Origin: Mobula hypostoma
Taxonomy: Eukaryota
Length of the DNA stretch: 64,000 nt
Direction of reading: 5' to 3'
Assembly: GCF_963921235.1 (NCBI RefSeq)
Contig: NC_086101.1
Location: 190,464,001 to 190,528,000 of the forward strand
Under the pieces are notes generated by a model that saw only the letters and a program-made list of their open reading frames with translations, was not told where the DNA came from and searched no databases. The position numbers and the translations under genes were made by a program. Positions 7,609 to 64,000 of this stretch are shown here, in pieces. Each line of letters opens with the position of its first letter. Position 1 is the first letter of the stretch.

Positions 7609-8007
7609 CCAATATTTCCAGTGTGATCCCAGGTTTGGACTCAGCCTTGAAGGTGCCCAGGCCCTGCCGACTAATTTCCACACGGCAGAAGTATTGATCG
7701 CTGTCATCCAGCGTAGCGTTCTGCAGCTCCAGGGCGGCATTTCCCTTTCTCGGGTCCCCAGCCAGTCTGTACCGGCCTTCAATATTTGTGTGAACTTCAT
7801 TCTCAAACTCCTTGCTGCCCTTGCTCCTGTTAGTCACGTTGAACAATACCGGCCCTTCGTAAAACACCTTTATCTTCCAGATGATGACAATCTCAACGGT
7901 CGTGTACTCAGTGTAGGGAGACTTTAAAGTGCAGGGCAAAACCACCGAATGTCCGACAGTACCGTTCACTCTCTCCGGGACCTCCACAGACATAAGGTCT
8001 GGGTCTC
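7609..8007 (-). CDS. SIGLEC15-like: Gene A exon: Ig V-set domain of a Siglec-15-like receptor
   Basis: Acceptor ctttatccctacag|GA and donor TTGG|gtaaat; 399 nt, phase 1-1. Translation (G)DPDLMSVEVPERVNGTVGHSVVLPC...IIWK...GRYRLAGDPRKGNAALELQNATLDDSDQYFCRVE...ESKPGITLEIL has the canonical C, W and D-x-x-x-Y-x-C. It resembles the Siglec-15 V domain as I recall it (GRFRLLGNPRRNDLSL...YFCRVEF...ESRHGVRLHV). Confidence 0.9.
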
Positions 8008-25818: not shown

Positions 25819-25876
25819 CTGAGATGAGCACCGCGGCCAGGAGTATTAAGAAGACCAGGAGGGGAGGGAAGGTCAT
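25819..25876 (-). CDS. SIGLEC15-like: Gene A exon 1: signal peptide MTFPPLLVFLILLAAVLIS(G)
   Basis: ATG at 25876, 19 mostly hydrophobic codons plus 1 nt, donor TCAG|gtaggt. Phase 1 joins in frame to the V exon at 8007 (G+GA=Gly). Lies at the edge of a CpG-rich unique island. Implied intron about 17.8 kb. Confidence 0.8.
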
Positions 25877-26480
25877 CCTCACACCGCGGACTCGGGCGCG
25901 CTGTCTCGGAGACTCGGCGACTAGGCAGGGCGGCAAACTGCGTCGCTCTCTTCCCCTCTCTGATGTCGCAAAAACCGAAAGTGAAGCTGCTGTCAGCTTC
26001 CTGTGTCTTTTGTGAAGTCCCCCGTTTAACTCCCGGTGAAGGGCGAAAGACTGGTCAAGTGCCCCACCTCCACGCGGGACTGATCCGACCGGCTCCGTCG
26101 CTGAACTGCGTGATCAACCGGGACTCTAGGCTCACCGGCACTGCCCGAGAGCGAGACTCTTCCGGCCTCTCCAACTCGCCCCGCTTCCTCAAAATAAAAA
26201 GCAACTGTGGCCGGCTGGACGCGCGGCGGCTCCGGAGATTTTTCTATCTCCAGGGCGTTCAGGAATTCTGAAGTGCAAAACCAAAGGGTAACCTAATCTA
26301 ACTCCTCCAAAGATAGAATGTGCGATACAGTCTTCCTCCTCGGAAATTCCAAGGGTAATTTTTCTTAAGCTGTTTAAAACAGGAAGCAGGTCAGGTAACG
26401 TGTACAACATTACCTCATTAATTTCAAGCCATTCTGTTTGCCACGAGGAACGAGGGGAGAAACCTTCAGGGGAAAAAACA
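25877..26480 (-). promoter_or_regulatory. Putative 5'UTR/promoter of gene A (CpG-rich island, ETS/PU.1-like motifs)
   Basis: Non-repetitive, CpG-rich sequence immediately upstream of the leader ATG; GGAA-core motifs such as cagcttcctgt, ccgcttcctc and aacaggaagc. Confidence 0.55.
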
Positions 26481-39189: not shown

Positions 39190-42100
39190 TCACCTCTTCT
39201 GGGGCAGGTGGGACCTGTACAAGAGAGACGGGTTACACTTGAACCACAGGGGGACCAATATCCTTTCAGGGAGGTTTGTTAGTGCTGTTGAGGAGGCTTT
39301 AAACTAGATTTGCAGGGGGATGGGAACCAGAGTGCCAGAGCTGACAGTGTGGCTGGGGTGAAAATAAATGGTGTTGAAAGTTTAAGCAAATCCGCTGATA
39401 GAAAGGTTGTGAGTGGTGGTAAAAATCTTCTGAGGTGTATATATTTCAATGCTAGGAGTATTGCGGGGAAGGCGGATGTGTTGAGGGCGTGGATTGACAC
39501 GTGGAATTATGATGTTGTAGCAATTAGTGAAACTTGACTACAGGAGGGGCAGGACTGGCAGCTTAATATTCCAGGGTTCCGATGTTTCAGATGTGATCGA
39601 GGCAGGGGAATGAAAGGTGGGGGAGTAGCATTGCTTGTTAGGGAAAATATTACAGCAGTGCTCAGGCAGGACAGATTAGAAGGCTTGTCTACTGAGTCCT
39701 TATGGGTGGAGCTGAGAAACAGGAAAGGTATGGCCACATTAGTGGGATTGTATTACAGACCACCCAATAGTCAACGAGACTTGGAAGAGCAAATCTGCAG
39801 AGAGATAGCAGGCAACTGCAGGAAACATAAAGTTGTGGTGGTAGGGGATTTTAATTTTCCATACATTGACTGGGACTCCCATACTGTTAGGGGTCTAGAT
39901 GGTTCAGAGTTTGTAAAATGTGTTCAGGAAAGTTTTCTAAATCAACATATAGAGGGACCAACTAGAGGGGATGCAATATTGGATCTCCTGTTAGCTAACG
40001 AATTAGGGCAAGTGACAGAAGTCTGTGTAGGGGAGCACTTTGGTTCCAGTGATCATAACACCATTAGGTTCAATTTGATCATGGACAAGGGTAGATCCGG
40101 TCCTAGGGTTGAGGTTCTGAACTGGAAGAAGGCCAAATTTGAAGAAATGAGAAAGGATCTAAGAAGTGTGGCTTGGGACAGGTTGTTCTCTGGCAAAGAT
40201 GTAATTGGTAGGTGGGAAGCCTTCAAAGGGGAAATTTTGAGAGTGCAGAGTTTATATGTTCCTGTCAGGATTAAAGGCAAATTGAATAGGAATAAGGAAC
40301 CTTGGTTCTCAAGGGATATTACAACTCTGATAAAGAAGAAGAGGGAGTTGTATGAAATGTATAGGAAACAGGGGGTAAATCAGGTGCTTGAGGAGTATAA
40401 GAAGTGCAAGAAAATACTTAAGAAAGAAATCAGGAGGGCTAAAAGAAGACATGAGGTTGCCTTGGCAGTCAAAGTCAAGGATAATCCAAAGAGCTTTTAC
40501 AAGTATATTAAGAGTAAAAGGATTGTAAGGGTTAAAATCGGTCCTCTTGAAGATCAGAGTGGTCAGCTTTGTGCGGAACCAGAGGAAATGGGGGAGATCT
40601 TAAATAGGTTTTTTGCATCTGTATTTACTAAGGAAGCTGGCATGAAATCCATGGAATTGAGGGAATCAAGTAGTGAGGCCATGGAAACTGTACAGATTGA
40701 AAAGGAGGAGGTGCTTGCTGTCTTGAGGAAAATTAAAGTGGATAAATCCCCGGGACCTGACAGAGTGTTCCCTCGGACCTTGAAGGAGACTAGTGTTGAA
40801 ATTGCGGGGGCCCTGGCAGAAATATTTAAAATGTTGCTGTCTACGGGTGAAGTGCCGGAGGATTGGAGAGTGGCTCATGTTGTTCCGTTGTTTAAAAAAG
40901 GATCGAAAAGTAATCCGGGAAATTATAGGCCGGTGAGTTTAACGTCAGTAGTAGGTAAGTTATTGGAGGGAGTACTAAGAGACAGAATCTACAAGCATTT
41001 GGATAGACAGGGGCTTATTAGGGAGAGTCAACATGGCTTTGTGCGTGGTAGGTCATGTTTGACCAATCTGTTGGAGTTTTTCGAGGAGGTTACCAGGAAA
41101 GTGGATGAAGGGAAGGCAGTGGATATTGTCTACATGGACTTCAGTAAGGCCTTTAACAAGGTCCCGCATGGGAGGTTAGTTAGGAAAATTCAGTTGCTAG
41201 GTATACATGGAGAGGTGGTAAATTGGATTAGACATTGGCTCGATGGAAGAAGCCAAAGAGTGGTAGTAGAGAATTGCTTCTCTGAGTGGAGGCCTGTGAC
41301 TAGTGGTGTGCCACAGGGATCAGTGCTGGGTCCATTATTATTTGTCATCTATATCAATGATCTGGATGATAATGTGGTAAATTGGATCAGCAAGTTTACT
41401 GATGATACAAAGATTGGAGGTGTAGTAGACAGTGAGGAAGGTTTTCAGAGCCTGCAGAGGGACTTGGACCAGCTGGAAAAGTGGGCTGAAAAATGGCAGA
41501 TGGAGTTTAATACTGACAAGTGTGAGGTATTGCACATTGGAAGGACAAACCAACGTAGAACATACAGGGTTAATGGTAAGGCACTGAGGAGTGCAGTGAA
41601 ACAGAGGGATCTGGGAATACAGATACAAAATTCCCTAAAAGTGTCGTCACAGGTAGATAGGGTCGTAAAGAGAGCTTTTGGTACATTGGCCTTTATTAAT
41701 CGAAGTATTGAGTATAAGAGCTGGACTGTTATGATGAGGTTGTATAAGGCATTGGTGAGGCCGAATCTGGAATATTGTGTTCAGTTTTGGTCACCAAATT
41801 ACAGGAAGGATATAAATAAGGTTGAAAGAGTGCAGAGAAGGTTTACAAGGATGTTGCCGGGACTTGAGAAACTCAGTTACAGAGAAAGGTTGAATAGGTT
41901 AGGACTTTATTCCCTGGAGCGTAGAAGAATGAGGGGAGATTTGATAGAGGTATATAAAATTATGATGGATATAGATAGAGTGAATGCAAGCAGGCTTTTT
42001 CCACTGAGGCAAGGGGAGAAAAAAACCAGAGGACATGGGTTAAGGGTGAGGGGGGAAAAGTTTAAAGGGAACATTAGGGGGGGCTGCTTTACACAGAGAG

Positions 42101-42318
42101 TGGTGGGAGTATGGAATGAGCTGCCAGACGAGGTGGTAAATGCGGGTTCTTTTTTAACATTTAAGAATTAATTGGACAGATACATGGATGGGAGGTGTAT
42201 GGAGGGATATGGTCCGTGTGCAGGTCAGTGGGACTAGGCAGAAAATGGTTCGGCACAGCCAAGAAGGGCCAAAGGGCCTGTTTCTGTGCTGTAGTTTCTA
42301 TGGTTCTATGGTTCTATC
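39190..42318 (+). mobile_element. Young CR1 LINE: end of ORF1 + near-intact EN-RT ORF2 (39310-42237), inserted in the 3'UTR of an older CR1
   Basis: Provided ORFs 39310-39537 and 39610-42171 are in the same frame; nonsense codons at 39535-39537 and 42169-42171; RT motifs (SQHGFVRGRSCLTNL, SGVPQGSVLGP, FTDD); tail (ttctatgg)n. Host CR1 continues as 38750-39190 and 42318-42400. Confidence 0.95.
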
Positions 42319-43544
42319 AGCCATGATCATACTGAATGGCGGTGCAGGCTCGAAGGGCCGAATGACCTACTCCTGCACCTATTTTCTATGTTTCTATGAC
42401 ACGGTTGAGGTGTTTAGGAATTAAAACAGACATGATAGAGCCCAGAATATACTTAAAATTCGAATCGACAAATAATGTCTTTGCAAGGCTCGTTAGGACC
42501 TTAACAGAATCTCAGTCAGTGCTTTAGACCGTAACGAGTTCAATAAAAGTTTTGTTCCCCAGGATGTAAACAGATATGGCACCTGGTGAAGGAATAGAGT
42601 TGGGATACAGCTCAGCCATCATCTCAATGGGCAAGGATTTGATTCGATGGCCTGAGCGGTTTGCCTTTATGTTCCAGCCCTTACTCTGGGCTTTCTTGAG
42701 TTCCCTTTCCTACTCCTGTCAATGGCTGTCTCTATTTAACATCTAACATTTAACCAGCAACCGTTATGGCTAGAAAATGTCCCTTACATTTAAAGTAATT
42801 TGGTTAAATGATATATGGTACAGACTGGTTTTTATTTTATTTATTTTTTACTTTCTGATACAGCACAGTAACAGGCCCTTCTAGTTCAATGAACCTGCAC
42901 TGCCCAATTGCACTGATGTGACTAATTAACCAACTAACCTATAAATCTTTTGACTATGGGAGGAAATCAAAGCACAAAGAGGAAACCCAAGTGGTCATGG
43001 GGAGAACATACAAACTCCTAACAGGCAGTGGCAGGAATTGAACCCATGTCACTGCCTCTGTAATAGCATTACACTAACTGCTAGGCTACCATGCCACCCC
43101 TTAAAAGGACTTACTTAAAATCAAGGGTTTGCTTGGTATTGGGAAGAGGTTTAAATATTACAGAAAATGAGGGGTCGATGTGTAGGTGGGTGATAGTCAC
43201 CACTCAGAGTGTGAGATTCGCTTTAAAGAGCAGACGTGCTTATCTTCAGTTCCTGCACATTATGAGTCAGAGCGTCCCGGTGCACAGGGTGTGATGGTGT
43301 ACGAGGTGCCTGACAGAAACCTGGACTGAAAAAGAACCCAGAGAACTGAGTTCAAGTTTCGCCTGAGCTGCTGTGGAATTTTCATTTACATTATATGGAA
43401 TTTACAAAGGTCGTCAGCTTCAGAACCTAAATACAGGGGGACCTCTGAGTCACTGATTACCTGATTTACGAAAACCTGACTTTAGGCAAATTCTCTGATA
43501 CATATTCAAAGCATTTTTCAATCTTGTATTAATAATAAAATAGT

Positions 43545-46075
43545 CATAGTCATACTTTATTGATCCCGGGGGAAATTGGTTTTCGTTACAGTTGCACCAT
43601 AAATAATTAAATAGTAAAAAACCCATAAATAGTTAAATAGTAATATGTAAATTATGCCAGGAAATAAGTCCAGGACCAGCCTATTGGCTCAGGGTGTCTG
43701 ACCCTCCAAGGGAGGATTGTAAAGTTTGATGGCCACAGGCAGGAATGACTTCCTATGACGCTCTGTGTTGCATCTCGGTGGAATGAGTCTCTGGCTGAAT
43801 GTACTCCTGTGCCCAACCAGTACATTATGTAGTGGATGGGAGACATTGTCCAAGATGGCATGCAACTTGGACAGCATCCTCTTTTTAGACACCACCATCC
43901 CCACAACATCAGTGGCCTTACGAATGAGTTTGTTGATTCTGTAGGTGTCTGCTACCCTCAGCCTGCTGCCCCAGCACACAACAGCAAACATGATAGTACT
44001 GGCCACCACAGACTCGTAGAACATCCTCAGCATCGTCCAGCAGATGTTAAAGGACCTCAGTCTCCTCAGGAAATAGAGACAGCTCTGACCCTTCTTGTAG
44101 ACAGCCTCAGTGTTCTTTGACCAGTCCAGTTTATTGTCAATTCGTATCCCCAGGTATTTGTAATCCTCCACCATGTCCACACTGACCCCCCGATGGAAAC
44201 AGGGGTCACCGGTACCTTAGCTCTCCTCAGGTCTACCACCAGCTCCTTAGTCTTTTTCACATTAAGCTGCAGATAATTCTGCTCACACCATGTGACAAAG
44301 TTTCCTACCGTAGCCCTGGACTCAGCCTCATCTCCCTTGCTGATGCATCCAACTATGGCAGAGTCATCCGAAAACTTCTGAAGATGACAAGACTCTGTGC
44401 AGTAGTTGAAGTCCGAGGTGTAAATGGTGAAGAGAAAGGGAGACAAGACAGTCCCCTGTGGAGCCCCAGTACTGCTGATCACTCTGTCGGACACACAGTG
44501 TTGCAAGCACATGTACTGTGGTCTGCCAGTCAGGTAATCAAGAATCCATGATACCAGGGAAGCATCCACCTGCATCGCTGTCAGCTTCTCCCCCAGCAGA
44601 GCAGGGCAGATGGTGTTGAACGCACTGAAGAAGTCAAAAAACATGACCCTCACAGTGCTCGCTGGCTTGTCCAGGTGGGCGTAGACACGGTTCAGCAGGA
44701 AGACGATGGCATCCTCAACTCCTAGTCGGGGCTGTAGGCGAACTGGAGGGGGGATCTAAGTGTGGCCTGACCACAGGCTGGAGCAGCTCCAGAACAAATC
44801 TCTCCAGGGTCTTCATGATGTGGGAGGTCTATGCCACCGGTCTGTAGTCATTGAGGCCGCTGGGGCGCGGCGTCTTCAGCACAGGGACGAGGCAGGATGT
44901 CTTCCACAGTACAGGAACCCTCTGGCGCCTCAGGCTCAGGCTGAACACAAGGCGAAGTACGCCACATAGCTGAGGGGCACAGGCTTTGAGCACCCTGGTA
45001 CTGACACCATCCGGTCCTGCAGCCTTGCTTGGGTTGAGATGTTTCAGCTGTCTTCTCACCTGTAGAGCTGTGAAGCCCACCGTGGTGGTTTCATGTGGGG
45101 AAGGGGTATAGTCATGAGAGTAGGGTGGGAGACTGTGAGGAGGGGTAGGAGAGGAGAGTGGAATATGCGTTGGTTGGGGGCCGACAACAGATGGCTCATG
45201 TGGGGGATGGGCAGGGGTCACAATGTCAAATCTGTTAAAGAACAGGTTAAGTTCATTGGCCCTGTCCACACTGCCTTCAGCTCCTCTGTTGCTAGTTTGC
45301 TGGAACACAGTGATGGTCCTCATCCCCCTCCAGACCTCTCTCATGTTGTTCTGCTGGAGTTTCCACTCAAGCTTCCTCCTGTACCTGTCTTTAGCCTCCC
45401 TGACCCTGGCTTTCAGGTCCCTCTGTATTGCCCTCAGCTCCTCCCTATTCCCATCTCTAAACACCCTCTTTTTAGCGTTCAGGATGTCCTTGATGTCCTT
45501 TGTCGCCCATGGCTTGTTATTTGAATAACAAAGGACAGTTCTTGTCGGAACATTGCAGTCCACACAGAAGTTGATGTAATCAGTGATGCACTCTGTGAGC
45601 CCATCAATATCCTCTCCATGTGGCTCACAGAGTGCCTGCCAGTCTGTCACCTCAAAACAACCCTGGAGCGCCTCATAAGCCTCCTCCGATCACTTCCTCA
45701 CTGTCCTCGAGGTTGCAGGTTTACTCTTCACCAGAGGCACACAGCAGGGTTTTAGATGCACCAGGTTGTGATCTGCCCTTCCCAGTGGGGGGAGGGGAGA
45801 GGAGCTGTATGCATCCTTAACGTTAGCGTACATCAAATCCAGAGTCCTCTCCCCTCTGCTTGTACAGCTCACATACTGCGTGAAGTTGGGCAGTGTTCTA
45901 GCCATGGTAACCTGGTTGAAGTCACCTGAGATGGTAATGAGGGCACTCGGGTGCTGGGTTTGTAATCTGGCTATGACAGTGTAAATGATGTTACACGCCG
46001 ACGTCGGGTTGGCAGAGGGAGGGATGTACACAACAACCACAATTGCATGCGAGATTTCCCTTGGCAAAGAATATG
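43545..46075 (-). mobile_element. Rex1/Babar-like LINE, 5'-truncated in the endonuclease domain, frameshifted
   Basis: VVYIPPSAN, TLDLMYANV, NDYRPVA, FFDFFSAFNTI, GAPQGTVLSPFLFTIYT, KFSDD; 3' end with (GACTAT)n at 43545; same family as 13350-14200. Confidence 0.9.
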
Positions 46076-46706
46076 GTGTTAATGACAGGATATATTCTGT
46101 TAGGTCAATTATGGGTAGTGTTCAGATGTTTCTTAAATGAGAGCTTTATAACGTGTGTAATGTGATATGATCATGGTTACTATCGAACACGGAACACTAC
46201 AGCCTTTCAGCCCACAATGTTGTGCCAGCCCTTTAACCTGCTCTAAGGTTAATCTAACCCTTCCCTCCCATGCCATCAAAAATGTATGGGCTAGGGTTAG
46301 TGAGTTGTGGGCAAGCTTTATTGGCATCGGAAGCATGGGAAGACTTACCAGTTTCCCTCAGTAGAGCCCCAGACTGCGTTGGTCATTGATGTAATTTCAC
46401 TGTATGTCTTGATGGCTCAGTGTTCTAATGTGACAAATAAAGCTAATCTTTAATACCTTCTGAGGAGGAAACGTGGCATTGATCAAAGTTCAAAATAAGT
46501 TTCACTATCAGAGTACGTATATGTCACCACATACAACCCTGAGATTCATTTTCCTGCAGGAATATTTCTATGTCTCTATATTCAGCAAATCTATAGAATA
46601 GTAACTATACCAGGATCAATGAAAGATCAACCGGAGTGCAGAAGACAACAAACTGCAAATACAAATGTAAGTAAATAGCAATAATTAATGAGGACATGAA
46701 AAAAGG

Positions 46707-47210
46707 AGAAATTTCTGGAATGCCTAGTTCGCTGCTGTTACTGTGCGATCAAGAATCTCCGGAGGGAAGGCCCCAAAATCCCCGGCTTTGCCTGCTGCTG
46801 GCGACCGAGGCTGAGGTCGAAACGTTTGGATAGAGATGGTGCTCGGTACTCGGTGTCGGAGGGCTGATCAGAGCTCAAAGTTTTCGGACGACTCAGAGTC
46901 GGACTGTGGTCGGGCATGGCAGGGAGAGTTTTCTTCCTTCTCCTGTCTGTGTGAGATGTGGGACTTTCAAGAAACTTTGAACTTTTTTACTGTGCCATGG
47001 ACTGTTCTTCATCAAGTTATGGTATTGTTGCACTGTTGTAACTATATGTTATAATTATGTGGTTTTTGTTTGTTTTTCAGTCTTGGTCTGTCCTGTGTTT
47101 TTGTGATATCACACCAGAGGAATATTGTATCACTTCTTAATGCATGTGTTACTAAATGACAATAAAAGAGGACTGCGTGTCCTCATAATCTAATCTAATC
47201 TAATAATCTA
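46707..47210 (+). mobile_element. About 0.65-kb non-coding retroposon family, copy 2 (5'-truncated)
   Basis: Shared body (ttcgctgctgttactgtgcgatc..., ttatggtattgttgcactgttgtaactatatg) and (TAATC)n tail. Confidence 0.75.
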
Positions 47211-48528
47211 AAATAACAAGATAAAGAGACCTTAAAGTGAGATTATTGGTTGTGGGAACATCTCTATGAGTGGGAAAGTGAGTGTAGTTATCCCCTTTTG
47301 TTCAAGAGCTCAATCGTTGTGGGGTAGTAACTGTTCTTGAACCTGGTGATGCGAGTCCCTAGGCTCTTGTACCTTCTACCTGATGGCAGCAGCAGGACGA
47401 GAGCATGGCCTGGGCGGTGAGGATCTCTGATGATGGATGCTGCTTTTTATGTAGATGCGTTCAATAGTTGGGAGGTCTTTACCCATGATGTACTGGGCTG
47501 AATCCACCATCTTTTGTAGGATTTTCCATTCAAGGGCACTGGTGTTTCCATACCAGGCCGCGATGCAGCCAGTCAATACACTCTCCACTACACATCTGTA
47601 GAAGTTTGTCAAAGTTTTTGATGTCATGTTGAATCTAGTGTGAGCTCTCTTCAATTTTAGACCCACCAGTGTGGTTGTCTCTTAAGTGCCATCTAACTGG
47701 CCAGCAGCCACTGTTCAAGGAACAACTTTTTTCAGCACATAAATTTATATGTAGTGTCAGGAATTTGCTGTGGTGTGTTGTCAGGGTGTGACATGCAACA
47801 GAAACAACATTCAGTGATTATAAGGAATAAATAACTATATAAAAATAAACAGAGAGGTTAAAGTACAGATATTGGAATAATATGTGCGTAAATACATAAA
47901 TTCCAACATGTATTTAAACAGCTGTACAAAAAGTGGTTTAAAGTGCTTCCAGTGCAGTGGTCGAAATGATAGAGAGGGTAGCAGCTCAGGTTAACTGCCT
48001 GGGAGATGAAATTTGTAAGATGGTGTGAAGTTTTTGTTTTAATTGCCCTATAAAATTTTCCAGAAAGGCAGTTTGCCTGGTGGGTAACAATTAGCAAAGA
48101 GCATTAATTCCCAACCTTGGAAGAGGTGCCAATGTCCTGAATAATGAGTAAATAAAGGAATGTGGCAGTGGAACATCACTAATTGGGACCAATGGGTGTG
48201 GAAATCCAATCAATAAATAATAATATTAGCTATGGACAAGATTGCTTGTAACACTAAGGCTGAGTATACATGCCATTTCAGCAGCTGACAAATTTAATTT
48301 GCTCTTATTTCCCTCACTTCCCCTTTAACACATTACTGCAATTCATCCCACTCACTTGGAAACCACTTCCACTTTCCTACTAAAACTCAGGTTAAGAAGT
48401 AAAATTCTCAATTCCTCTTTGGGACTTCTGGTAAATGTGTTTCCGGTGCCTGCTCTTGGAAACATTGCGTAATTATTAACCAATTCTATTGTTACTTTCT
48501 TTTATGTCCTGTTATTCTCTCAATAAAC

Positions 48529-49020
48529 TACACATGATTGAACAAAAGTGTAAAAGTTGTGTGATTGGACAAGGTGTATAAACTACACTCAATTGGACAT
48601 AAGTGTAAAAGCTACATGATTGGACAAAGGTGTAAAACTACACCTGATTGGACAAAGATGTAAAAGCTACACATGATTGGACAAAGATGTAAAAGCTGCA
48701 AATGATTGGATAAAGGTGTAAAAACTACAAACAAGAGAAAATCTGCAGATGGTGGAAATCCAAGCAACACACACAAAATGCTGGAGGATCTCAGCAGGCC
48801 AGGCAGCATCCCTGAAACATCGACTGTACTTTTTTCCATAGATGCTGCCTGGCCTGCTGAGTTCCTCCAGCCTTTTGTGTAAAATCTACTCCAGATTGGA
48901 CAAAGGTGTAAATACTTCACGTGATTGGACAAAGGTGTAAATACTGCACGTGATTGGACAAAAGTGTAATTACTGCACATGATTGGACAAGAGTGTGAGC
49001 ACTACATGATTGGACAAAGC
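48529..49020 (+). repeat. About 28-bp minisatellite (ctacacatgattggacaaaggtgtaaaa), about 12 units, interrupted by a Penelope-terminus hairpin
   Basis: Directly visible tandem units; insertion at about 48727-48880. Confidence 0.9.
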
Positions 49021-49484
49021 CAGAGTGGGTCTCTGAAAGGGAGGTAATGCTTAAAGAATCTACTAGAACAATTTGAAGCTATATAAAGTTCAAAGTTCAA
49101 ACTAAATTTATTATCAAAGTAGATATATGTCTCCATACATTAACTTGAAATTTATTTTCTTGCAGAAATTTATGGGAAAAAATTAGTACAATGGAAAAAG
49201 CTACACATAAATAGACAAGGATTGATAAATATAAACACAAGATATGCTGCAGTTGATGGAATTCCAGAGTAACACAAACAAAATGCTGAAGGAATTCAGC
49301 AGGTCAGGCAGCATCTACGGAGAGGAATAAACAGTTGACTTTCCAGGCTGAGACCTTTCATCAGGACTGGAAAAGAAGAAAGAAGAGGTCAAAATAAGAA
49401 GGTGAGAGGCGGGGTGGGAAAGAGTACAAGCTGGCAGATGATAGGTGAGACCATGTGATGGGGACGGAGGTGGATGGGGAAGGT

Positions 49485-49700
49485 AGGCGGATGAGGAAGT
49501 CAGTGGATGGGGAAGTCAGTGGATGGGGAAGGCAGTGGGTGGGGAAGGCAGTGGATGGGGAAGGCAGTGGGTGGGGAATGCAGCAGATGGGGAATGCAGC
49601 AGATGGGGAATGCAGCAGATGGGGAAAGCAGATGGATGGGGAATGTCGGTGGATGGGGAAGGCAGACAGATGGGGAAGGTGGCGGATGGGAAGGCAGTGG
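49485..49700 (+). repeat. About 16-bp G-rich minisatellite (ggcagtggatggggaa)n inside a minus-strand Penelope terminal repeat
   Basis: Directly visible tandem units. Confidence 0.85.
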
Positions 49701-51073
49701 ATCAGGATAAAGTAAGAATCTCAGATTAATAGGTGGAGGAAGGAACCTGAAAGGAGAGGAGAGTGGACCATGGGAGAAAGAGAAGGAGAGGGGGAACCAG
49801 ATGGTCGAGATAGGCAGGGCAAAGTCAAAGTGGGTCTTTGATGGGAAGATCATGTCAACACTAGAGCATTTTGAATCTGTACAAAATTTGAAGTAAATTG
49901 ACTATCAAAGTGTACATATGTTACCATATGAACCTTGAGATTCATTTTCAGTGGGTGAAAATGTTGTCTCCCAGATTTCTATTTAATCTCTCTCCTCTCA
50001 CCTTACACCCATGCCGTCTGGTTTCAAAAGAGCGTGTGTGCGTTCACCCTGTCCATACCCCTGGTGGTACTCATTCATTTGTCTGTGGTGACAAAAAGGT
50101 CATTTGCACACATCAACACGAGAACTGCAGTCATTTTGATGACTGAGTCACACTGGAAAATGCATGGCAGGTAAAGGCTGAAGTGGATCAATTTGTGGTT
50201 ATCCACTTCTGTTTCCAAAGCGGAAAGCTATTATTCCCAATGAAGTCCTTCTGATGAGCCCCGATGAAGGGTCTCGGCCCGAGTCATCGACTGTTTATTC
50301 CTGACCTGCTGAATTCCTCCAGTATTGTGTGTGTGTTTCTCAAGATTTCCATTATCTGCAGAACCTCTTGTGTTTCAACTATTATTCTCTGTGTGGTGGT
50401 GGACTGGAAAGGGGAGATACAACATCTGCATCAGGCAGAAGGTACCACAGAATAAAAACAAAGAGAGTTCGGCTGGTTCACAGCTTGTTCTTCTGGGCTG
50501 TGAGGCTTCTGAACGCCCTGCTGTGACTCAGAGAGCCCCCGTACGTATACTTGAATTTACAAATGCTGAGGGAGCTTGTTCATAAGTACAAATGTCCATA
50601 AGTCAATTATTTATAACCTATGGACAATCTGTACAAAAGGGAGATGTTCTTTTACATAGCATCCTTATGTCAGGACACTTTTTAAAGTTTTGGTAAACAC
50701 AATTAGTGTTCACGTGGAAAAGATTGTACTGTTCACAGTTACACACACAAAATGCTGGAGGAACTCAGCAAGTCAGGCAGCATCAGCAGAGAGGTACAAA
50801 GAGTCAGGCCGAGACCCTTCATCCAGATTCAAACCTTCAAACTTTTCACAACATTCTCCAAAGATGTTCATTTTAGTAAAACCCCTAAGAATAGGTCAAA
50901 ATGGAAGTGCTTGTGTTCCAGTGGATGCTGTGTTTTCCATGGTCCAGAATTGCCACGTCTTCTGAATTATAGTGCGTCAATAAGTAGAATCATTCCGTCA
51001 ACATACAAGAAACTGCTCTCCCCAGGTGTTCAAACTCATTGTGAATGGGGATTGTTGTAAATGTACGAATCTT

Positions 51074-51081
51074 TCAGTTCT
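51074..51081 (-). CDS. Possible terminal coding micro-segment of gene B (adds E-N-stop)
   Basis: Strong minus-strand acceptor tttttgttcccttgccag at 51082-51099 in unique sequence; phase-1 reading gives (G)AG AAC TGA. Other acceptors compete (near 50150 and at 43325). Confidence 0.3.
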
Positions 51082-51539
51082 CTGGCAAGGGAACAAAAAT
51101 TGGAAGACCAAGAGTTAATTAGTAAAATAAGGTAAAGATCTTACCTCTAAGACTAAAGATTAGCTTTATTTGTCACTTGTTCTTCGAAACATCAAACATA
51201 CATATGTTGGTGCCGGCAGCAGAGCACATTTGGTAACTGCCTCTAGAACATGTTCAGACAGTGTTGGTCATTGACGCAAAAAAACATATTTCACTGCACT
51301 TAAAATACGTTATTTTGCATCAATGTGAACACAGTCCGAACAGATCCTGGAGGCAGCCAGCAAGCGTTGCCATGCTGCCAGCACCAAAACAGCATGACCA
51401 CAACTTATTTACCCTAACCTGTACGTCTTTGGAATATGCGAGAAAACTGGAGCGCCTAGAGGAAACAAACACAGGGAGAGCAAACAAACTTACAGGCAAG
51501 GACAATATTTGACTGCAATCAGTTGCCACGTAAAACGGG

Positions 51540-53040
51540 TAAAATTGCGATAATCGTGGAGGATTTCAGTATACAAGTAGACTGGGAAAATCAGGTTGGT
51601 GTTGGATTTCCAAGAGAGGGAATTTCTACAAGATAGCTTTGTTAAAGCAATTTGTGTTTGAACCCATTAGGGGAATGGCAACTGTGGACTGGGTGTTCTG
51701 TAATAACCTGGATTTGGTTAGAGAGCTTAAGGTAAAGGAACCCTTAGGAGACAGTGACCATAATATGATAGAATTCACCCTGCAGTTTGAGAAGAAGAAG
51801 CTAAAATTGGATATATCAGTATTACAGTGGAATAAAGGGAATACAGAGGCAAGAGAGAGGAGCTGGACAAAGTGGTTGGAAGGGGGCAGGAGCAGGGATA
51901 TCAACAGAATAGCAATGTCTAGAGTTTCCAAAGGGAAATTTGGATGGTGCAGGATAGTTACATCCAAAACATGCTGCACACGAGGTTGCTTAATAGGTTA
52001 AGAGTCAATGGTATTGGAGGAAAGATACTAGCATGGATAGAGCATTGGATGATTGGCAGGAGGCAAAGAATGGGAATAACGGGGATTTTTTCTAGTTGGC
52101 TGCCAGTGACTAGTAATGTGCTCAGAGGTTGGTGTTAGGTTCACTTCTTTTCACATCATATGTCAATGATTTGAATGAAGGAATTGATGGCCTCGTGGCT
52201 AAGTTTGCAGATGATACAAAGATAGATGGAGGGACAGATAGTGTTGAGGAAGCAGGGAATCTGCAGAAGGACTTAGACTGATTGGGAGAATGGGGAAAGT
52301 GGCAGGTGAAATATAACGTAGGGAAGTGCATGGTCATGCACTTTGGTAGACGGAATAAAGGGATGGACTATTTTCTTAATGGGGAGTAAATTCAAAAATC
52401 AGAGGTGCAAAGAAACTTGGGAGTCCTCATGTAAGATTCCCTAAAGGTTAACTTGGAGTTTGAGATGGTGGTACGGAGGGCAATCTTAATGTTACCATTC
52501 ATTTTAAGAGGACTAGAATATAAAAGCAGGGATGTAATGCTGAGGCTTTATAATGCATTGGTCAGACCTCACATGGAGTATTGTGAGCATTTTAGTGTCC
52601 CTTATCTAAGAAAAAATGTGCTGGCATTGGAGAGGAGGTTTACGAGAATGATCCCAGGAATGAAAAGGTTAATGTATGAGGGTTGTTTGATGGTTCTGGG
52701 CCTGTACTTACTGGAGTTTAGGAGAATGAGGATCTCATTGAAGCCTATCGAATACTGAACGGCCAAGACAGAGTGGAGGTGGAGAGGATGTTTCCTATAG
52801 TGGGTAAGTCTAGGACCAGAGGGCACCACCTCAGCATTGAGGGAGATCCATTTAGAAGGAAGATGAGGAGGATTTTTTTTTTTGCCAGGGCATGGTGAAT
52901 CTGTGGAATTCATTGCCACAGGCGGCTGTGGAGGCCAAGTCATTGGGTATATTTAAGGCAGAGTTTGATAGGTTCTTCATTAGGGAGGGTATCAAAGGTC
53001 CCAGGCCCAAGGCAGGAGAATGGGGTTGTGAGGGATAATA
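51540..53040 (+). mobile_element. Heavily deleted CR1 LINE
   Basis: EPLGDSDHNMIEF, KFADDTK-like, VRPHMEYCE fragments; 3' part runs to about 53040. Confidence 0.75.
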
Positions 53041-53576
53041 AACCAGACAGAGGGCATGTCCTGGGTGATGGGGACCCTTAACGATGGATGCCGCCTTTTC
53101 GAGGCATCGCCTTTTGAAGATGTCCTCAGTGCTGGGGAGGCCAGCGCCCATGATGGAGCTGGCTGAATTTACAACTTTCTTCAGCATTTTCAGATCCTGT
53201 GCGGCAGTCTCTCCTGCATACCAGGCAGTGATGCAGCCAGTTAGAATGCTCTCTACAGCCCATAAGAGGGGGCATGATTTTAAGGTGATTCAGGATGATA
53301 GAGTTAAGTTTTTCTACACGTGCATGGAATGCCTTGCCAGGGGTGGTGGTAGAGGAAGACACATTGGGGGCATTTAGGGGACTTAGGCATTTGGATGATA
53401 GGAAAATGGAGACTATGTGGGAGGGAAAGTTTAGATTGATATTAGAGTAGGTGAGGAGATCGGCGCAGCATTGTGGGCTGAAGGACTGGTTCCGTGCTGT
53501 AATATTCTATGTTCTGTGATGGCTAACTGCCTCACTTCACACTCGCTTTAAAACAAATAGATGAGGCCTGAGGTAC

Positions 53577-53957
53577 CTTTTATCTTAATGAAGAGAATGA
53601 TGCCTGTTATTAGAAGGAGAAGAAACTTAATCAGTGGAATCAGGCACAGCATTCCGATGATGAAATTCGAGTAACTGTTATCGGTGGCGGACAGGTCAAT
53701 CTCGCGCGTGTCTCTTCCGTGTCCATTCTCAGCCACGCAGTGGTAGCTTCCTCCCGTCCTGGGGCGGAAAAGCTCCCCAACAACCTGATGTCGCTCTGGA
53801 TCTCGCGTGAATCTCATCTCACTACCGTTGGCGGGCAATGCACTGTTCTCAGGGCCGATCCACGTGATGATTGCAGGGGGTTCTCCTTCAGCCCTGCACA
53901 CCAGGGTCTCTCTGTCATCATCAGTCACAAGAGACAGCTCCAGGATGGTGGCTGGGA
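53577..53957 (-). CDS. SIGLEC15-like: Gene B exon: Ig C2-set domain + stalk + transmembrane helix with Lys
   Basis: Acceptor tttttgtttctcctcgag|TC and donor AAAG|gtacct; 381 nt, phase 1-1. (V)PATILELSLVTDDDRETLVCRAEGEPPAIITWIGP...HQVVGELF...GSYHCVAENGHGR...FIIGMLCLIPLIKFLLLLITGIILFIKIK matches recalled Siglec-15 C2/TM motifs (CTAEGEPPPALAWSGP, HLVTAELP, GRYTCTAANSLGR, FKALLLLG). Confidence 0.92.
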
Positions 53958-54189
53958 CTCGAGGAGAAACAAAAANNNNNNNNNNNNNNNNNNNNNNNNN
54001 NNNNNNNNNNNNNNNNNNNNNNNNNNNNNNNNNNNNNNNNNNNNNNNNNNNNNNNNNNNNNNNNNNNNNNNNNNNNNNNNNNNNNNNNNNNNNNNNNNNN
54101 NNNNNNNNNNNNNNNNNNNNNNNNNNNNNNNNNNNNNNNNNNNNNNNNNNNNNNNNNNNNNNNNNNNNNNNNNNNNNNNNNNNNNNNAT

Positions 54190-54800
54190 AAGACATAGGG
54201 ACAGATTTAGGCCATTCGGCCCATTGATTATGCTCCATCATGGCTGATGTATTATCCTTCTCAACCTTGTTTTTCTATCTTCTATCCAAAACCTTTGATG
54301 CCCTGATTAATCAAAAACCTATATAAAAACTTCAGTTTTAAACATATTCAATGACATGTGCTCCAAGACCATCCATGGCAATGAATTCTACAGATTTACC
54401 ACCCTTTGTCTGAAGAGGTTCCTCCTCATCTCTGTTCTAAATGGATCGTCCCTCTATTCTGAGGCTGTGCCTTCCCCCACTGTAGGACACATCCCCTCCG
54501 CGTCCACTCTATCTCGGCCTTTCAATATTTGATAGGTTCCAAGGAGATCCCCCACCGTTATTCTAAACTCTAGGGAGTCCAGGCCCAGAGGCATCGAATG
54601 ATCCTTATACGTTAACCCTTTCATTCCCAGAACCATTCTCGTGAACCTCCTCTGGACCCATTCCAATGCCAGCACATCTTGTCTCAGATAAGAGGCCCAA
54701 TGCTGCTTACAATACTCCAAGTGTGGTCTGACTAAAGCTATGGAAAGCCTCAACATTACATCCTTGCTTTTATATTCGAGTCCTCTCAAAATGAATGCCA
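54190..54800 (-). mobile_element. CR1 3' fragment next to assembly gap 53976-54187
   Basis: MLAFILRGLEYKSKDVMLRL..LVRPHLEYC on the minus strand. Confidence 0.8.
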
Positions 54801-56709
54801 ACATTGGATATGTTTATAACGAACATTAGGGTCTTTTTACCCTTCCAGTTTCTTAACTCTACCCACAAGGATTCTACATCTCCTGATGCTACATCTCTTC
54901 TTTATAAAGATTTGTTTTCAGTTTTTACCTACAGAGAGAGCCCACCCCCTCTGCTTTCCTGTCTGTTCTTTCGATGGAATGTGTATCTTTGGATATTAAG
55001 CTCCGAGCTATGATCTTCATTCAGCCACGATTCAGTGGGATTCAGCCCTATCACACCAGTTCCCAAGCCCCTGCCAAGTTCATTTGAACTCTCCCCAACA
55101 GCTCCAGCAAACCTGCCTGCAAGGATATTGGACCCCTCTTGGGTTCAGGTCCAACCCGTCCTTTTTGTCCGGGTCATACCTTTCCCAGAAGGGGGAATCC
55201 TCATACTGTTTATATCACATATATGTCTCACGATATACAGAAACTAAAGCGAACTGTCAGGTCAGCAGTAAAGGCCATTGACTGCAGTCAACCATCACTG
55301 TTGTTCGTCCATCACTGACGTCGATGAGGACCTCAACACCATTATTGATGGTGTCGAGACTAGCGCGTGACTTGGATTTAAGTGAGGGAGAGTTGCGCAG
55401 CGTCAGCCTCACTCTCTCTTCCCAATTCCCATCTGGATCCAGTGGCAAGACAGAGTCTAGATGGCTGGAGATGGGACTAGGTGCAGTGGATGACCAGGAC
55501 GTCTTCTGTGTCTTGTCCTGCTCTACACGTTCCACGACGCTTGCAAAGACCACCTTCTTGACCGTTGGACCTTCCATTGGTCTCGTCCACTCAATCCGCC
55601 GGAGTCTGTCTTCACATGCTGGGATAGACAACTCCCTATCTCACCGAGGGTTTGAGACCCGTCGGCTACCCTCACCTGGTTTAGCCGGCTTGTCGAAGCC
55701 GTTGCCTGGGGTGTGGCCGCTGTCGCATGCAAACAGCTATGGGGAGCCTCAGGTGAGAGCTGAGTGCCAGGTGGGGACCAAAGGTGGACTAACCGCCCTG
55801 AAAAGGACACGACATGTTCCCCCACCAGAGGTGCTACCCCTCCCTGACACCCCATATACATCACTGTAGGACTTGTACGTGTCCAGAACAAAGGAGCAGG
55901 CAGGCGACATTATTGGACACCACCCATCCTGCAAACTGCCTTCTCCAAAAGCTCTCTTCTGGAAAGCACCATAGGGCAATTAAAACAAAAACTGCACACC
56001 ATCTTAAAAGTTTCTTCCCCCAAGCAGTTAATCTGATCAAACATTGTAGTTAGCACCCGTGGGTATTTATATATTTATGCACCTTTTATCCCATATGCTG
56101 TTTTTTTGTTACATGCTGCACCCTGACCAGCACACCACAACAAATTCCGAGTATATGTAAATGCATATGGCAAACAAAGGTGATCCTTGATGCACTATCC
56201 TCTCACTTACACCACTGTGTCAGTCAGCCTGAGGGAATGACTGGTATAGGAAGCAGCTGTGTGGAGCTGACAGATAAGTTTCCTGTTCGCGCACTGCTCC
56301 ACTGCTGTGGGAAGGGGAAGGAAACCCATGTGGCGATGGGAGAATGAGCAAACTCCTTACACATAGCGGTAAGGGATTGAACCCTGGTGACCTTTGGCAC
56401 GGTCATGTGATTGCGTTAACTGGTGCGCTACCGTGCAGTTTGTTTCTCCGCTGTATCTCAGTTCAGTTCAGAATGCTAATTGCTTGTGTTTATTGTTTTC
56501 ATGATTTACTTTTCTCTCTGCAGTGTTTGACAGTCTGTTTCTAATGGGCTCTTTTGGGTTTCTTTGTTTAGCGGCTGCCTGTTGGGAGACGAATCTCAAG
56601 GTTGTATAATGTACACATACTTTGAAGTAAATGTATCTTGAACTTTGAATCAGGTCAGAATCACTGATATTGTCATGAGATAAAGCGACAGTAAATTTGA
56701 CCTTTATCA

Positions 56710-57340: not shown

Positions 57341-59037
57341 TTTATGCCATTAGATATGTGCTCAATGGGGAATGATTCCGGCGCTCTGCAGATGAAGCAG
57401 GGAGTGGGCAATGCTTTCTAAATGGCAGCAGAGACAAACAGGCCAAATAGCCTTGCTCTGTGTTGTAAAATTCCACTAGTCTGCACTGAGGCTGCAGTTA
57501 ACACCTTGCACAGTTTCTTTGCCAGCACCCGTCAGTCCCATGACGAACTTCTACCACCTTTGAATGACAGGCACAGAGAAATACTGTCAAGTTTCCCAGT
57601 TGCCACTATCCAGGCCAGTCCCTCTTCTTGCTACTACCGTCAGGAAAGAGTTACAGGAGCCTCAGGCCCCACACCACAACACTGAACTGATTCTACGACC
57701 TGCAGACTCTCTTTCAAGCACTCTTTACAACTCACGTTCACAGTATTGTTTTAATTTACATAGTCTGAATTCCCTTATGCATTGATTGTTTGTCAGTCTT
57801 CCTTTATGTCTGGTATTTCATAAGTTTTATTGTATTCTTACAAGTGTATTTTATTCTCTATTGATTATGTAGTTCCAGTAATATCTATAAACTGTAATTC
57901 ATTTAATTGTATCTGGTGTTTTGTCTGTTATTTGGGCGGGGTGGGGTACATCACACAGCATCCACACAAACTAATTACCCATTTTGGCGGGGCTGAGGGC
58001 TGTTTCCCTAGACGACAGTGAGCCGAGCGACCCTGAGGGTGGCCGGGGGGGCTACACAAGCTTACAAGAAAATGAATCTCGAGGTAGTTCAGTTTGTTTT
58101 CTTTTGCACATTGAACATTTGCCAGTCTTTCTGGGAGCCCGCGGCATCCGATTACACCATGTGACCAATTAACCTACTAACCGGTACACCTTTGGGACTG
58201 TGGGAGGAAACTGGAGCACCCAGAGGAAACCCACACAGTCACAGGGAGAACGTACAAACCCCTTGCAGACAGCAGCGGGAATTGAACCCAGTTCACTGTA
58301 ATAGTGTGATGCTAACTGCTAGGCTACCGTGACATACCACCATCATTTCCTCCTGGAGTCCTCTGGGGCCCTTCCATGATGTTTTATTTAGAGATAGAGC
58401 AGGGTAACAGGCTGTTCTGGTTCAAAGACCCAGTGTCACCCATTTACGCCCATGTAACCAATTAACCTATTAATCCGGAGGAAAATGACGTGGTCACAGG
58501 AAGAAAGTAGAAACTCTTTACAGACTGTGGTGGTCACTGGTGCTGTAATACTAACTTACATATAGTATTTTTTGTAAGATTCTATTGCATTTCTTTTTCC
58601 CTGTAAATATCTGTAAGCAAACAAATCTCAAGTTAGTACATGGTAACATACACGATTTTTAATGGGAAATTTACTTTGAAAGTTGAAGTTGAGTGAAATT
58701 AATTTAAAGTTGATGTGGAATTTGAAAACTGTGTAACTTTGAAGTTACACACCTCCCTGACCTGGAAACAAAATGCTGCCAATTCGATCTAAATTCTGGG
58801 AGCTTCTGCTCAGACGTGCTGGGGGAGCACCGTCACCGCAGGGACAGCAGCAGCTCAGACAGGGAGTCTGCCACCACTCTGCTGAGCAGAAGGGAGTGCA
58901 GATGGGTAAGAAATGCTGGTGCTAGCCACGATCTCCTTATGAATAAAGAGAAACACCATCAAATCCACTCCAGGACGAACGATGCTAAGGCTCAAGAATT
59001 ACGGCTGCTGTTCTCACTGACAAAGGTGTTTCCTTAC

Positions 59038-59397
59038 CTATAACCTGGAGTCCTGTCTCGTCCTGAATCACCGTTTCCCATGTGGAATTCCTGACCCAAA
59101 CACAACAGAAATAATCACCAGAGTCATTCATTCTGAGGTCCGTCACCCCGATGGAGGCGTCTCCCTGCTCTGGGTTTCCCACCAGCTCATAGCGACCTCC
59201 TTCGTTTACAGTGATGGTGTAGGGAGTGCTGACGGAGCTGGAGCGAGTCTGATTGAAGACAGTGGTCCCTTTCCAAGGATTCCCCTTCGTCCAGAGGATA
59301 GTGATGGACGCAACTTTCTTATCAAGGGGGCTGAAGGAACAGGGCAGTCTGGAAGAACCTCCCCTCTTCCCGATCACCGAAGTTGCTTTGAAACCAC
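59038..59397 (-). CDS. SIGLEC15-like: Gene B exon: Ig V-set domain of a Siglec-15-like receptor (essential Arg replaced by Cys)
   Basis: Acceptor ttctctatccaag|GT and donor ATAG|gtaagg; 360 nt, phase 1-1. (G)GFKATSVIGKRGGSSRLPCSF...ILWTKG...GRYELVGNPEQGDASIGVTDLRMNDSGDYFCCVWV...TGLQVI. Splices in frame to 53957. Confidence 0.9.
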
Positions 59398-61439: not shown

Positions 61440-62300
61440 AGAACATAGAACAGTACAGTACAGGCCCTTCAGCCCACTTTGTTGTGCTAACCTTTTAACC
61501 TACTCCAAGATCAATTTAATTCTTCCCTCCCACATAACCCTCCATTTTTCTATCATCCATGTGCCTATCTAAGAATCTCTAAATGTCCCTGATTTATCTC
61601 TCTACCACCACCCCTTGCAGCACAGTCCATGCACTTACCACTGTCTGTGTAAAAATACCTTACATCTGACACCCCCCCATATACTGTACTTTCCTCCAAA
61701 ATCTCTTTAACATTATGCCCTCTTGTTTATACATTTATGCCCTGGGGAAAAGACTCTGGTTACCTACTCTATTCATGCCCCTTATCAACTTATCCACCCC
61801 TATCAAGTCACTTTTCATCCTCCTTCGCTTCAAAGAGAAAAACCCTCGATCACTCAACCTGACCTCAAAAAACATACTCTCTAATCTAGGCAGCATCCTA
61901 GTAATTCTCCTCTATACCCTCTCTAAATGTTCCACACCCTTCCTATAATGAAGCAACCAAACTGAACACAATACTCCAAAGTCTAACCAGAGTTTTATAG
62001 AGCTGCAACACTACCTCACAACTGTAGAATTCAATACCCTGACTAATGAAAGCCAACACAACGTACACCTTCTCAATCAACCTATCAACTTGCATAGCAA
62101 CTTTGAGGGGTCTATGGACGTGAAACCCAAGATCCACCTGTTCTTCCACACTGCTAAGAATCTTTCCATTAACCCTGTGCTCTACCTTCAAGTCCAAGCT
62201 TCTAAAGTGAATCACCTCACACTTTTCTGATTGAACAGCATCTGCCACTTTGCAGCCCAGCTCTCTAGCCTGTCAATGTCCTATTATAATCTACGACAAA
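61440..62300 (-). mobile_element. CR1 3' fragment
   Basis: EKCEVIHF...VEEQVDLG...VLAFISQGIE...LYKTLVR on the minus strand. Confidence 0.8.
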
Positions 62301-62334
62301 CGTCTACACTATCCACAACCAATCTACCACAAAG

Positions 62335-62950
62335 GTGACGCATTATATTATTTCGCTGAACACCTACGCTCTGTCGGCCAGAGAAAGCAGGATCTCCCAG
62401 TGGCCACACATTTTAATTCCACGTCCCATTCCCATTCTGATATGTCTATCCACGCCTCTCTACTGTAAAGACGAAGCCACACTCAGGTTGGAGGAACAAC
62501 ACCTTATATTCTGTCTGGGAAGCCTCCAACCTGATGGCATGAACATTGACTTCTCAAACTTCCACTAATGCCCCACCTCCCCCTCGTACCCCATCCGTTA
62601 TTTATTTATTTACATACACATTTTCTTTATCTCTCGCTCCTTTTTCTCCCTCTGTCCCTCTCACTATACCCCTTGCCCATCCTCTGGGCTTCCCCCCACC
62701 CCTTTTCTTTCTCCCTAGGCCTCCTGTCCCATGATCCTCTCATATCCCTTTTGCCAATCACCTGTCCAGCTCTTGGATCCATCCCTCCCCCTTTGGATCT
62801 CCCCCTCCCCCTCCCACTTTCAAATCTCTTACTAGCTCTTCCTTCAGTTAGTCCTGACGAAGGGTCTCGGCCCGAAACGTTGACTGTACCTCTTCCTAGA
62901 GATGCTGCCTGGCCTGCTGCGCTCACCAGCAACTTTGATGTGTGTTGCTT
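62335..62950 (+). mobile_element. Penelope 3' fragment (GIY-YIG C-terminus + terminal repeat)
   Basis: FAEHLRSVGQRKQDLPVATHFNSTSHSHSDMS; EATLRLEEQHLIFCLGSLQPDGMNIDFSNF. Confidence 0.85.
62850..62885 (+). ncRNA. Minimal type-I hammerhead ribozyme motif (Penelope-associated)
   Basis: AGUC-CUGACGA-A-GGGU(CUCG)GCCC-GAAAC-GUU-GACU: stem I AGUC/GACU, complete core, stem II, palindromic ACGU in place of stem III. Confidence 0.7.
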
Positions 62951-63079
62951 TATATCATTGAATGGTGAAGCAGGTTGCAGGCTCCATTTGGTTGACTCCT
63001 GACCCTCGATTTTATGCTCTAAGGTGACCAAGAAGCACAGCAGATGTTCAGAAAGTTTCCACATATAACAATAAAGCAG

Positions 63080-63790
63080 TAACACATGAAAAACTGGAGG
63101 AACTATGTGCGTCAGGAGGGAAATAGGCAGATGATGTTTTGGGTTGAGACCGTTCATCAGGACTGGAAATAAAGAGGAGAGATAGACAGTATAAAGAGGG
63201 TAAAGAGGAGGGGGGAGGGATGGAACAAGAGCTGGTGGGTGACAGATGAAATGAGGTGTGATTGGCAGGTCAGGGATGGATATCACTGGCAATGATGCAA
63301 GAAGCTGGAGGTGAGAGGTGGAGATCATAAAGGGTTGAAAAGGATGGAATCTGTTAGGAGCGGACGGTGGACCATGGAATCTGTTAGTAGCAGACAGTGG
63401 ACCATGAAATAAAGGGAAGGAAGTGAGGAGGGGAACTGGAGAGTGGAATGTGCGAGCAGGCAGGAAGAGTGATGAGGTTAGTAATTACTGATCAAAATGG
63501 GGCAGAGGGGAGTGGTTACCAGAAGCTAAAGAAAATGATGTTCATACTTCAGGTTGGAGACTACCAAGGCAGGATATGAGATGGTTGTTCCTGGCAATAG
63601 TGGAGGCGATGAACAGACATATTGGTGTAGAAATGGGAATTGGAATTTAGTTGCAGAAGGGTCCTGGTGTGACAGCAGCAGGGAAGGAAGGAGTTCAGTG
63701 AAGTGAACCCAAATCTATGTTGGGTCTCCTGGATATAGAGGAGGCTGCTTTGGATACAATACATGATACTGATGCATCGCCATGTGAGGG
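63080..63790 (-). mobile_element. Penelope 3' fragment (minus)
   Basis: Reverse-complement GIY-YIG region (YIQETQHR...HFYTNMSVH...QEQP) and degenerate hammerhead terminus at about 63135-63170. Confidence 0.65.
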
Positions 63791-64000
63791 ACTGTTTCAC
63801 CACCTGCACAGTAAAGTAAGGACAATGTCAACTGTTTTATTGATGTTGCTTGAGATATTGGCCAAGTCATCAGGAAGAAACCCTCTGCTGCTTTTGCAGA
63901 TGGTACTATGGGGTCTTTTCTGATCACTTTAGTGAGCTAACTGGAGCATTGTTTATCAGCTCATCTGAAGGAAGCCACTTCCAATGGGGCAAGACTCTGT

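Follow-up and report, generated by a model that had tools for sequence, protein, structure and literature searches.

Cys254 of a Siglec-15-like receptor of Mobula hypostoma lies in the second V domain of a V-V-C2 protein and very probably did not replace a sialic acid-binding arginine

A TGT codon in a Siglec-15-like gene of Mobula hypostoma, here termed gene B, places a cysteine (Cys254) at the position occupied in human Siglec-15 by the arginine that is essential for sialic acid binding. Gene B very probably encodes a receptor with two V-set domains, a C2-set domain and a lysine-containing membrane helix, in which Cys254 belongs to the second V domain (D2) and arose there from a histidine by way of a tyrosine, with no arginine lost; the first V domain (D1) has a leucine at the corresponding position. 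The original prediction, which took this codon for a change of the ligand-binding arginine (CGT to TGT) in the style of human Siglec-XII, is contradicted on this point, as the exon encodes D2 and its orthologues have His or Tyr at the position. D2 had been taken for the only V domain of the receptor because the D1 exon lies outside the window (the whole 64,000-nucleotide stretch of DNA that was analysed).

Gene B is located on the minus strand and corresponds to the RefSeq protein XP_062903801.1 of M. hypostoma (P0004, 402 aa; gene LOC134346377, to which isoforms X1 and X3 are also assigned). The D2 exon spans 59038..59397 (minus strand; 360 nt; phase 1 at both ends; acceptor ..ccaag/GT, donor ATAG/gtaagg); in a HMMER search of 1.84 billion representative proteins, its translation was identical to residues 156–275 of this protein, with the exon for the C2 domain and membrane helix next. 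Among the HMMER matches to this translation, the aligned part is usually the second V domain. The C2-set domain and the membrane helix are encoded by a single exon at 53577..53957 (minus strand), whose acceptor in isoform X2 is shifted 6 nt inward, to 53951; two intervals of the window are masked by N (6950–7512 and 53976–54187), the latter immediately before this exon. The helix (IPLIKFLLLL) contains a lysine, encoded by AAG at 53626..53628 (minus strand), and the protein ends with a basic KIK stop-transfer sequence and a two-residue terminus. The product is thus a type I membrane protein in which V-set precedes C2-set (V, V, C2, TM; Pfam), in the order signal peptide, D1 (approximately residues 26–155), D2 (156–275), C2-set domain, lysine-containing membrane helix and a 2–3-residue tail.

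Local tblastn within the window, run on a copy with 58198–58238 masked, located the D2 and C2 plus membrane helix exons and found no copy of D1 (residues 28–136); the D1 exon therefore lies beyond position 64000. A simple pattern search of 40000–53574 did not locate the terminal exon of gene B, which would carry the E and N codons and the stop. Reverse-transcriptase-like open frames and low-complexity Pro/Ser-rich frames occur in the introns and flanks at 52000–55000 and 61900–63500, as expected of retroelement debris.

The reading frame of gene B is intact and its membrane helix matches the Hypanus helix residue for residue, hence the gene does not look like a decaying copy. One predicted transcript departs from the architecture described above: RefSeq isoform X3 (P0151, 375 aa) uses an internal GT within the D2 exon (59117..59118, minus strand) as a donor, joining ...RMNDS straight to ATILEL, with the F and G strands of D2 and both of their cysteines gone. 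Since the truncated D2 could not fold as an Ig domain, this splice is probably cryptic or non-productive. The lysine-containing helix hardly varies between sharks and rays. A lysine within the membrane helix characterizes receptors that associate with adaptors of the DAP12 type. In Siglec-15, the membrane lysine serves pairing with DAP12/DAP10 (PMC7226832). By its build, gene B would be an activating receptor, predicted from this lysine to signal by way of a DAP12-type adaptor.

The codons at issue are as first read. On the minus strand, gene B has TAT TTC TGT TGT GTT TGG, translated as Y F C C V W; the first TGT (59105..59107) encodes Cys253, the canonical F-strand cysteine of D2, which does not vary among the orthologues and corresponds in the alignment to C142 of human Siglec-15, and the second (59102..59104) encodes Cys254, which directly follows this disulfide cysteine and aligns with R143. 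As also described, the D2 exon encodes three cysteines, namely that of the B-strand LPC motif, Cys253 and the extra Cys254. A second V-set exon in the same window and on the same strand, approximately 51 kb away, belongs to gene A (7609..8007, minus strand; phase 1 at both ends); it is of the single-V Siglec-15 type and reads TAC TTC TGC CGT GTG GAA, i.e. Y F C R V E, with the arginine codon CGT at 7682–7684. Pfam classes the two exons as V-set Ig domains (PF07686; E 1.6e-14 for gene B and 8.8e-12 for gene A). No later exons of gene A are visible in the window. At 25793–25900 on the minus strand, tblastn gave a weak match (36 aa, 50% identity, E 5e-4) to residues 77–112 of Leucoraja Siglec-15, a part that precedes the Leucoraja V domain. 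This segment, approximately 18 kb from the V exon of gene A, may represent one of that gene's upstream exons.

The alignment of Cys254 with the essential arginine is borne out both by sequence and by predicted fold. In human Siglec-15, C142 forms a disulfide with C64, R143 on strand F makes a salt bridge to sialic acid, and the R143A substitution abolishes sialic acid binding; the human protein also has a loop disulfide, C95–C104 (PMC10264397). HMMER pairs 'yfCCvw' of gene B with 'yfCRve' of human Siglec-15 (7ZOZ), with an E value of 9.4e-9 for D2, and the AlphaFold model of D2 (pLDDT 88) has 7ZOZ as its best match in the PDB (Z 16.9, rmsd 2.3 Å, 116 residues aligned), approximately 3 Z units above the next entry. 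In this superposition, model residues 3–120 are aligned with residues 47–165 of the 7ZOZ chain, such that model residue 99 (Cys254) falls at or near residue 143. In the model of the full-length protein (pLDDT 83.9), Cys254 is in the middle of the strand formed by residues 249–259, next to the disulfide cysteine Cys253; a Foldseek search with the three-domain model gave generic multi-Ig matches only. The assignment of gene B as a Siglec-15 paralogue also stands; both of its V domains match human Siglec-15 (7ZOZ) best among solved structures.

The two V domains of gene B belong to separate and old domain types. With D2 as the query, scores of 100–145 bits are obtained for the D2-type domains of skates, rays, sharks and chimaera, compared with 15–38 bits for D1 domains; D1-type domains show the reverse pattern, scoring high to D1 of gene B and low to D2. 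In a maximum-likelihood tree of 47 domains, all D2 domains form one group (support 100/100) apart from D1 and the single-V Siglec-15 domains, the Mobula exon being sister to Hypanus D2 (100/99). D1 domains likewise form one group (95/86), which meets the gene A clade and the bony-vertebrate Siglec-15 clade at a three-way fork, with D2 outside (100/100). The V domain of gene A groups with that of skate 'Siglec-15' (100/96); it scores 189 bits to Amblyraja Siglec-15 and 34–38 bits to either domain of gene B. To set the gene A V domain against D2 of gene B is, as judged from these domain relationships, to compare non-orthologous domains across the deepest split in the family.

The membrane helices of single-V proteins were also inspected. 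The helix lysine is absent from the skate single-V protein (Amblyraja Siglec-15, P0128) and none is visible in the chimaera protein (Callorhinchus Siglec-15, P0167); the helix of bird Siglec-15 (VPLGIKVLILL; P0132) resembles that of the V-V group to which gene B belongs (IPLIKFLLLL). In view of the three-way fork and the skate helix without lysine, either the gene A clade or the V-V clade may be the true cartilaginous-fish orthologue of tetrapod Siglec-15.

The history of the D2 position was traced through protein residues in a full-length orthologue alignment (A1) and a D2 alignment (A3), with codons outside the Mobula TGT being deduced from those residues. In a wider census, the position equivalent to R143 is His in 23 of the 29 D2-type domains sampled. 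In the alignments, it is His in Pristis, Leucoraja and Rhinoraja, in Cetorhinus, Heterodontus, Chiloscyllium, Mustelus and Heptranchias, and in Callorhinchus. Tyr is present in Hypanus sabinus and Hemitrygon akajei, the orthologues that are 85–88% identical to gene B, and Rhincodon is the sole species with Arg; Cys occurs in Mobula (M. hypostoma) only. D2 very probably originated long ago as an internal duplicate of a Siglec-15-like V domain, which would explain why its F strand still aligns with that of Siglec-15 and why Cys254 falls on R143. The histidine at this position would date from before the chimaeras split off from sharks and rays; it would then have been replaced by Tyr in the stingray (myliobatiform) orthologue, and Tyr by Cys in the lineage of Mobula. 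By parsimony on the protein states over the accepted species tree, the shortest path would be CAY to TAY to TGY, i.e. two single transitions without an arginine stage, the Tyr intermediate being drawn from the two dasyatid species and parsimony. The strongly conserved histidine may reflect a binding role of D2's own, altered by the changes to Tyr and Cys.

D1 resembles the V domain of human Siglec-15 more closely than D2 does (E values against 7ZOZ of 6.9e-15 and 9.4e-9, respectively) and has the CTFTHPH..Y.G motif in common with it. In the alignment with 7ZOZ, 'ytCLvel' of D1 is paired with 'yfCRvef', which places Leu133 at the position of R143, and Leu is found there in nine of the 10 orthologues compared (A1), from stingray, sawfish, skates and four sharks. 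The exception is Mustelus, which has Arg in D1; Arg is also present in an inhibitory-tailed Pristis paralogue and in a Callorhinchus protein (P0014). Gene B accordingly has no N-terminal V-set domain with an F-strand arginine, given Leu133 in D1 and Cys254 in D2. The leucine of D1 being old, the receptor probably lost canonical sialic acid binding long ago, as far as this can be read from the residues. Of the proposal that gene B is a non-lectin, one part survives, in that its product is probably no canonical sialic acid lectin, by reason of the D1 leucine beyond the window; the other part, that this came about through loss of an arginine at Cys254, does not.

Variation at the N-terminal position was also observed elsewhere. 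Three D1 domains of Callorhinchus milii (P0157–P0159) read WSC-C-VEL, and near-identical neighbours read WSC-R-VEL; going by these sequences, Arg and Cys would genuinely alternate at the N-terminal R143 position, a case nearer to the Siglec-XII pattern than that of Mobula. The RefSeq protein P0002 of Mobula birostris (874 aa) looks like two tandem V-V-C2-TM genes fused, the first copy short-tailed and the second with a long tail bearing several Tyr motifs; D1 of both copies has Gln at the arginine position.

Cys254 itself is a lineage-specific substitution and would lie on the outward face of the GFCC' sheet of D2, in so far as a residue in the middle of strand F and adjacent to Cys253 points its side chain outward in standard Ig geometry. 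It may remain a free thiol, form a bridge to Cys124 of D1, or form an intermolecular bridge. The ectodomain of Mobula contains eight cysteines, and those of Hypanus and Pristis seven. All three have an extra cysteine, Cys124, in the E–F turn at the base of D1, which is lacking in skates and sharks. Were Cys254 bonded either to Cys124 or to its own counterpart in a second molecule, the Mobula receptor would have a disulfide-locked shape or be a covalent dimer, a property absent from the stingray and shark orthologues; we regard such bonding as unlikely overall. Many V domains pair through the face of the GFCC' sheet, and an apparently unpaired cysteine on that face could link two copies of the receptor covalently, or the receptor to another surface protein; an N-glycosylation sequon (NST) four residues after Cys254 could nonetheless shield it, and we consider an intermolecular bond of this kind quite improbable. 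An intramolecular bond between Cys254 and Cys124, which would fix the angle between D1 and D2, is consistent with the even number of ectodomain cysteines in Mobula and with the unpaired state of the Cys124 equivalent in Hypanus and Pristis; moreover, the secondary structure of the model suggests that Cys124 is at the D2-facing end of D1 and Cys254 outward on the D2 sheet. Against this, Cys124 is older than Cys254 and is present alone in stingrays and sawfish, and the middle of strand F lies away from the end of D2 in contact with D1; this bond is, in our view, distinctly improbable.

There is little reason to doubt that the TGT codon is real. Within the 100 bases at 59054–59153, which span the codon, all of the sampled words (7/7) were recovered in each of four source DNA runs, and likewise (7/7, at contig level) in a run of M. 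hypostoma with another sample code (X5). In the latter, the share of a 1001-base stretch that was recovered (0.36) equals the share of the exon and comprises exon words only, which suggests that X5 is spliced RNA. In a close relative (sister species), 5/7 words of the same 100 bases were recovered, in DNA and probable RNA runs alike, and the sister species thus differs from M. hypostoma somewhere within them. That difference, together with the fact that the codon evidence is at contig level and contigs drop rare variants, leaves some room for TGT being an artefact of assembly or a variant that segregates in M. hypostoma; with four source runs and an exon-share run of another sample code all complete across the codon, we consider this very improbable.

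Least credible of all, and to be given almost no weight, is that, as in Siglec-XII, gene B lost lectin activity when the essential sialic acid-binding arginine of its ligand-binding V domain was changed to cysteine: the position aligns with R143 in both sequence and fold, CGT and TGT are one transition apart, the R122C change of human SIGLEC12 is known (PMC12654080) and Rhincodon has Arg at the D2 position, but the exon encodes residues 156–275, i.e. the second V domain and not the N-terminal one, the nearest orthologues have Tyr and all farther ones other than the whale shark His, and starting from Arg would take more substitutions than the route from His through Tyr to Cys. The reading of Cys254 as a late replacement in D2 of a V-V-C2 receptor is therefore the one retained here.

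Had a change from Arg to Cys held, gene B would have provided an independent second instance of the event in human Siglec-XII. Siglec-XII also has two V-set domains, as well as its Arg-to-Cys change, R122C (PMC12654080), but there the change struck a working lectin domain for which the ape orthologues keep the arginine, whereas in gene B the cysteine is in D2 and the orthologues have His or Tyr. Neither hallmark of an inactivation of the Siglec-XII type was found in gene B, i.e. an arginine in orthologues or in the ancestor of the same domain, and a location in the N-terminal ligand-binding V domain. More generally, a Siglec-15-like F strand in a cartilaginous-fish V-set exon need not mark a lectin domain; likeness of the F strand is not enough for such a call because, in this receptor group, the V domain is duplicated and the copy has His at the 'arginine' position.

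Gene B has every element of a group of shark and ray receptors, namely D1, D2, C2, a lysine-containing helix and a very short tail, and over its full length it is 85–88% identical to the stingray orthologues and approximately 50% identical to those of sharks. Members of this group appear in databases under the labels 'Siglec-15', 'Siglec-12', 'CXADR-like' and 'uncharacterized'. A search with D2 alone recovered no short database fragments, and no long fused gene model that might contain a Mobula birostris orthologue came to light. A literature search for Siglec-15 in cartilaginous fish, sharks and elasmobranchs found no paper on the V-V-C2 receptor group, and a survey of fish Siglecs is limited to teleosts (PMC7226832). 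Gene B is thus already predicted in RefSeq, and its receptor group is known from databases, not from the literature searched. For questions about ligands, the group offers a natural set of activating-type Siglec-15 relatives without the arginine, beside paralogues that keep it.

Among known relatives, human Siglec-15 (UniProt Q6ZMC9, 7ZOZ) shares with gene B the V fold and a C2-set domain following V, and bird Siglec-15 shares the lysine in the membrane helix. Unlike human Siglec-15, gene B has two V domains, Leu (D1) or Cys (D2) at the R143 position, and a tail of just 2–3 residues; it has the membrane lysine of a Siglec-15 orthologue but not the arrangement of one V and one C2 domain. Gene A, to be placed with the skate and chimaera 'Siglec-15' proteins (XP_032874289.1 and XP_042192107.1), has, like gene B, a Siglec-15-like V fold, and reads YFCRVE; in contrast to gene B, it falls in the single-V clade and keeps the arginine. 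The closest counterparts are the V-V-C2 lysine receptors of Hypanus sabinus, Pristis pectinata, Leucoraja erinacea and Heterodontus francisci, which have the same domain order and the same D1 and D2 types as gene B, and share with it a nearly identical membrane helix (IGMLCLIPLIKFLLLLITGIILFIKIK) and the leucine of D1. They differ from gene B of Mobula at the D2 position, where receptors of this kind show no Cys but His or Tyr, with Arg in the whale shark.
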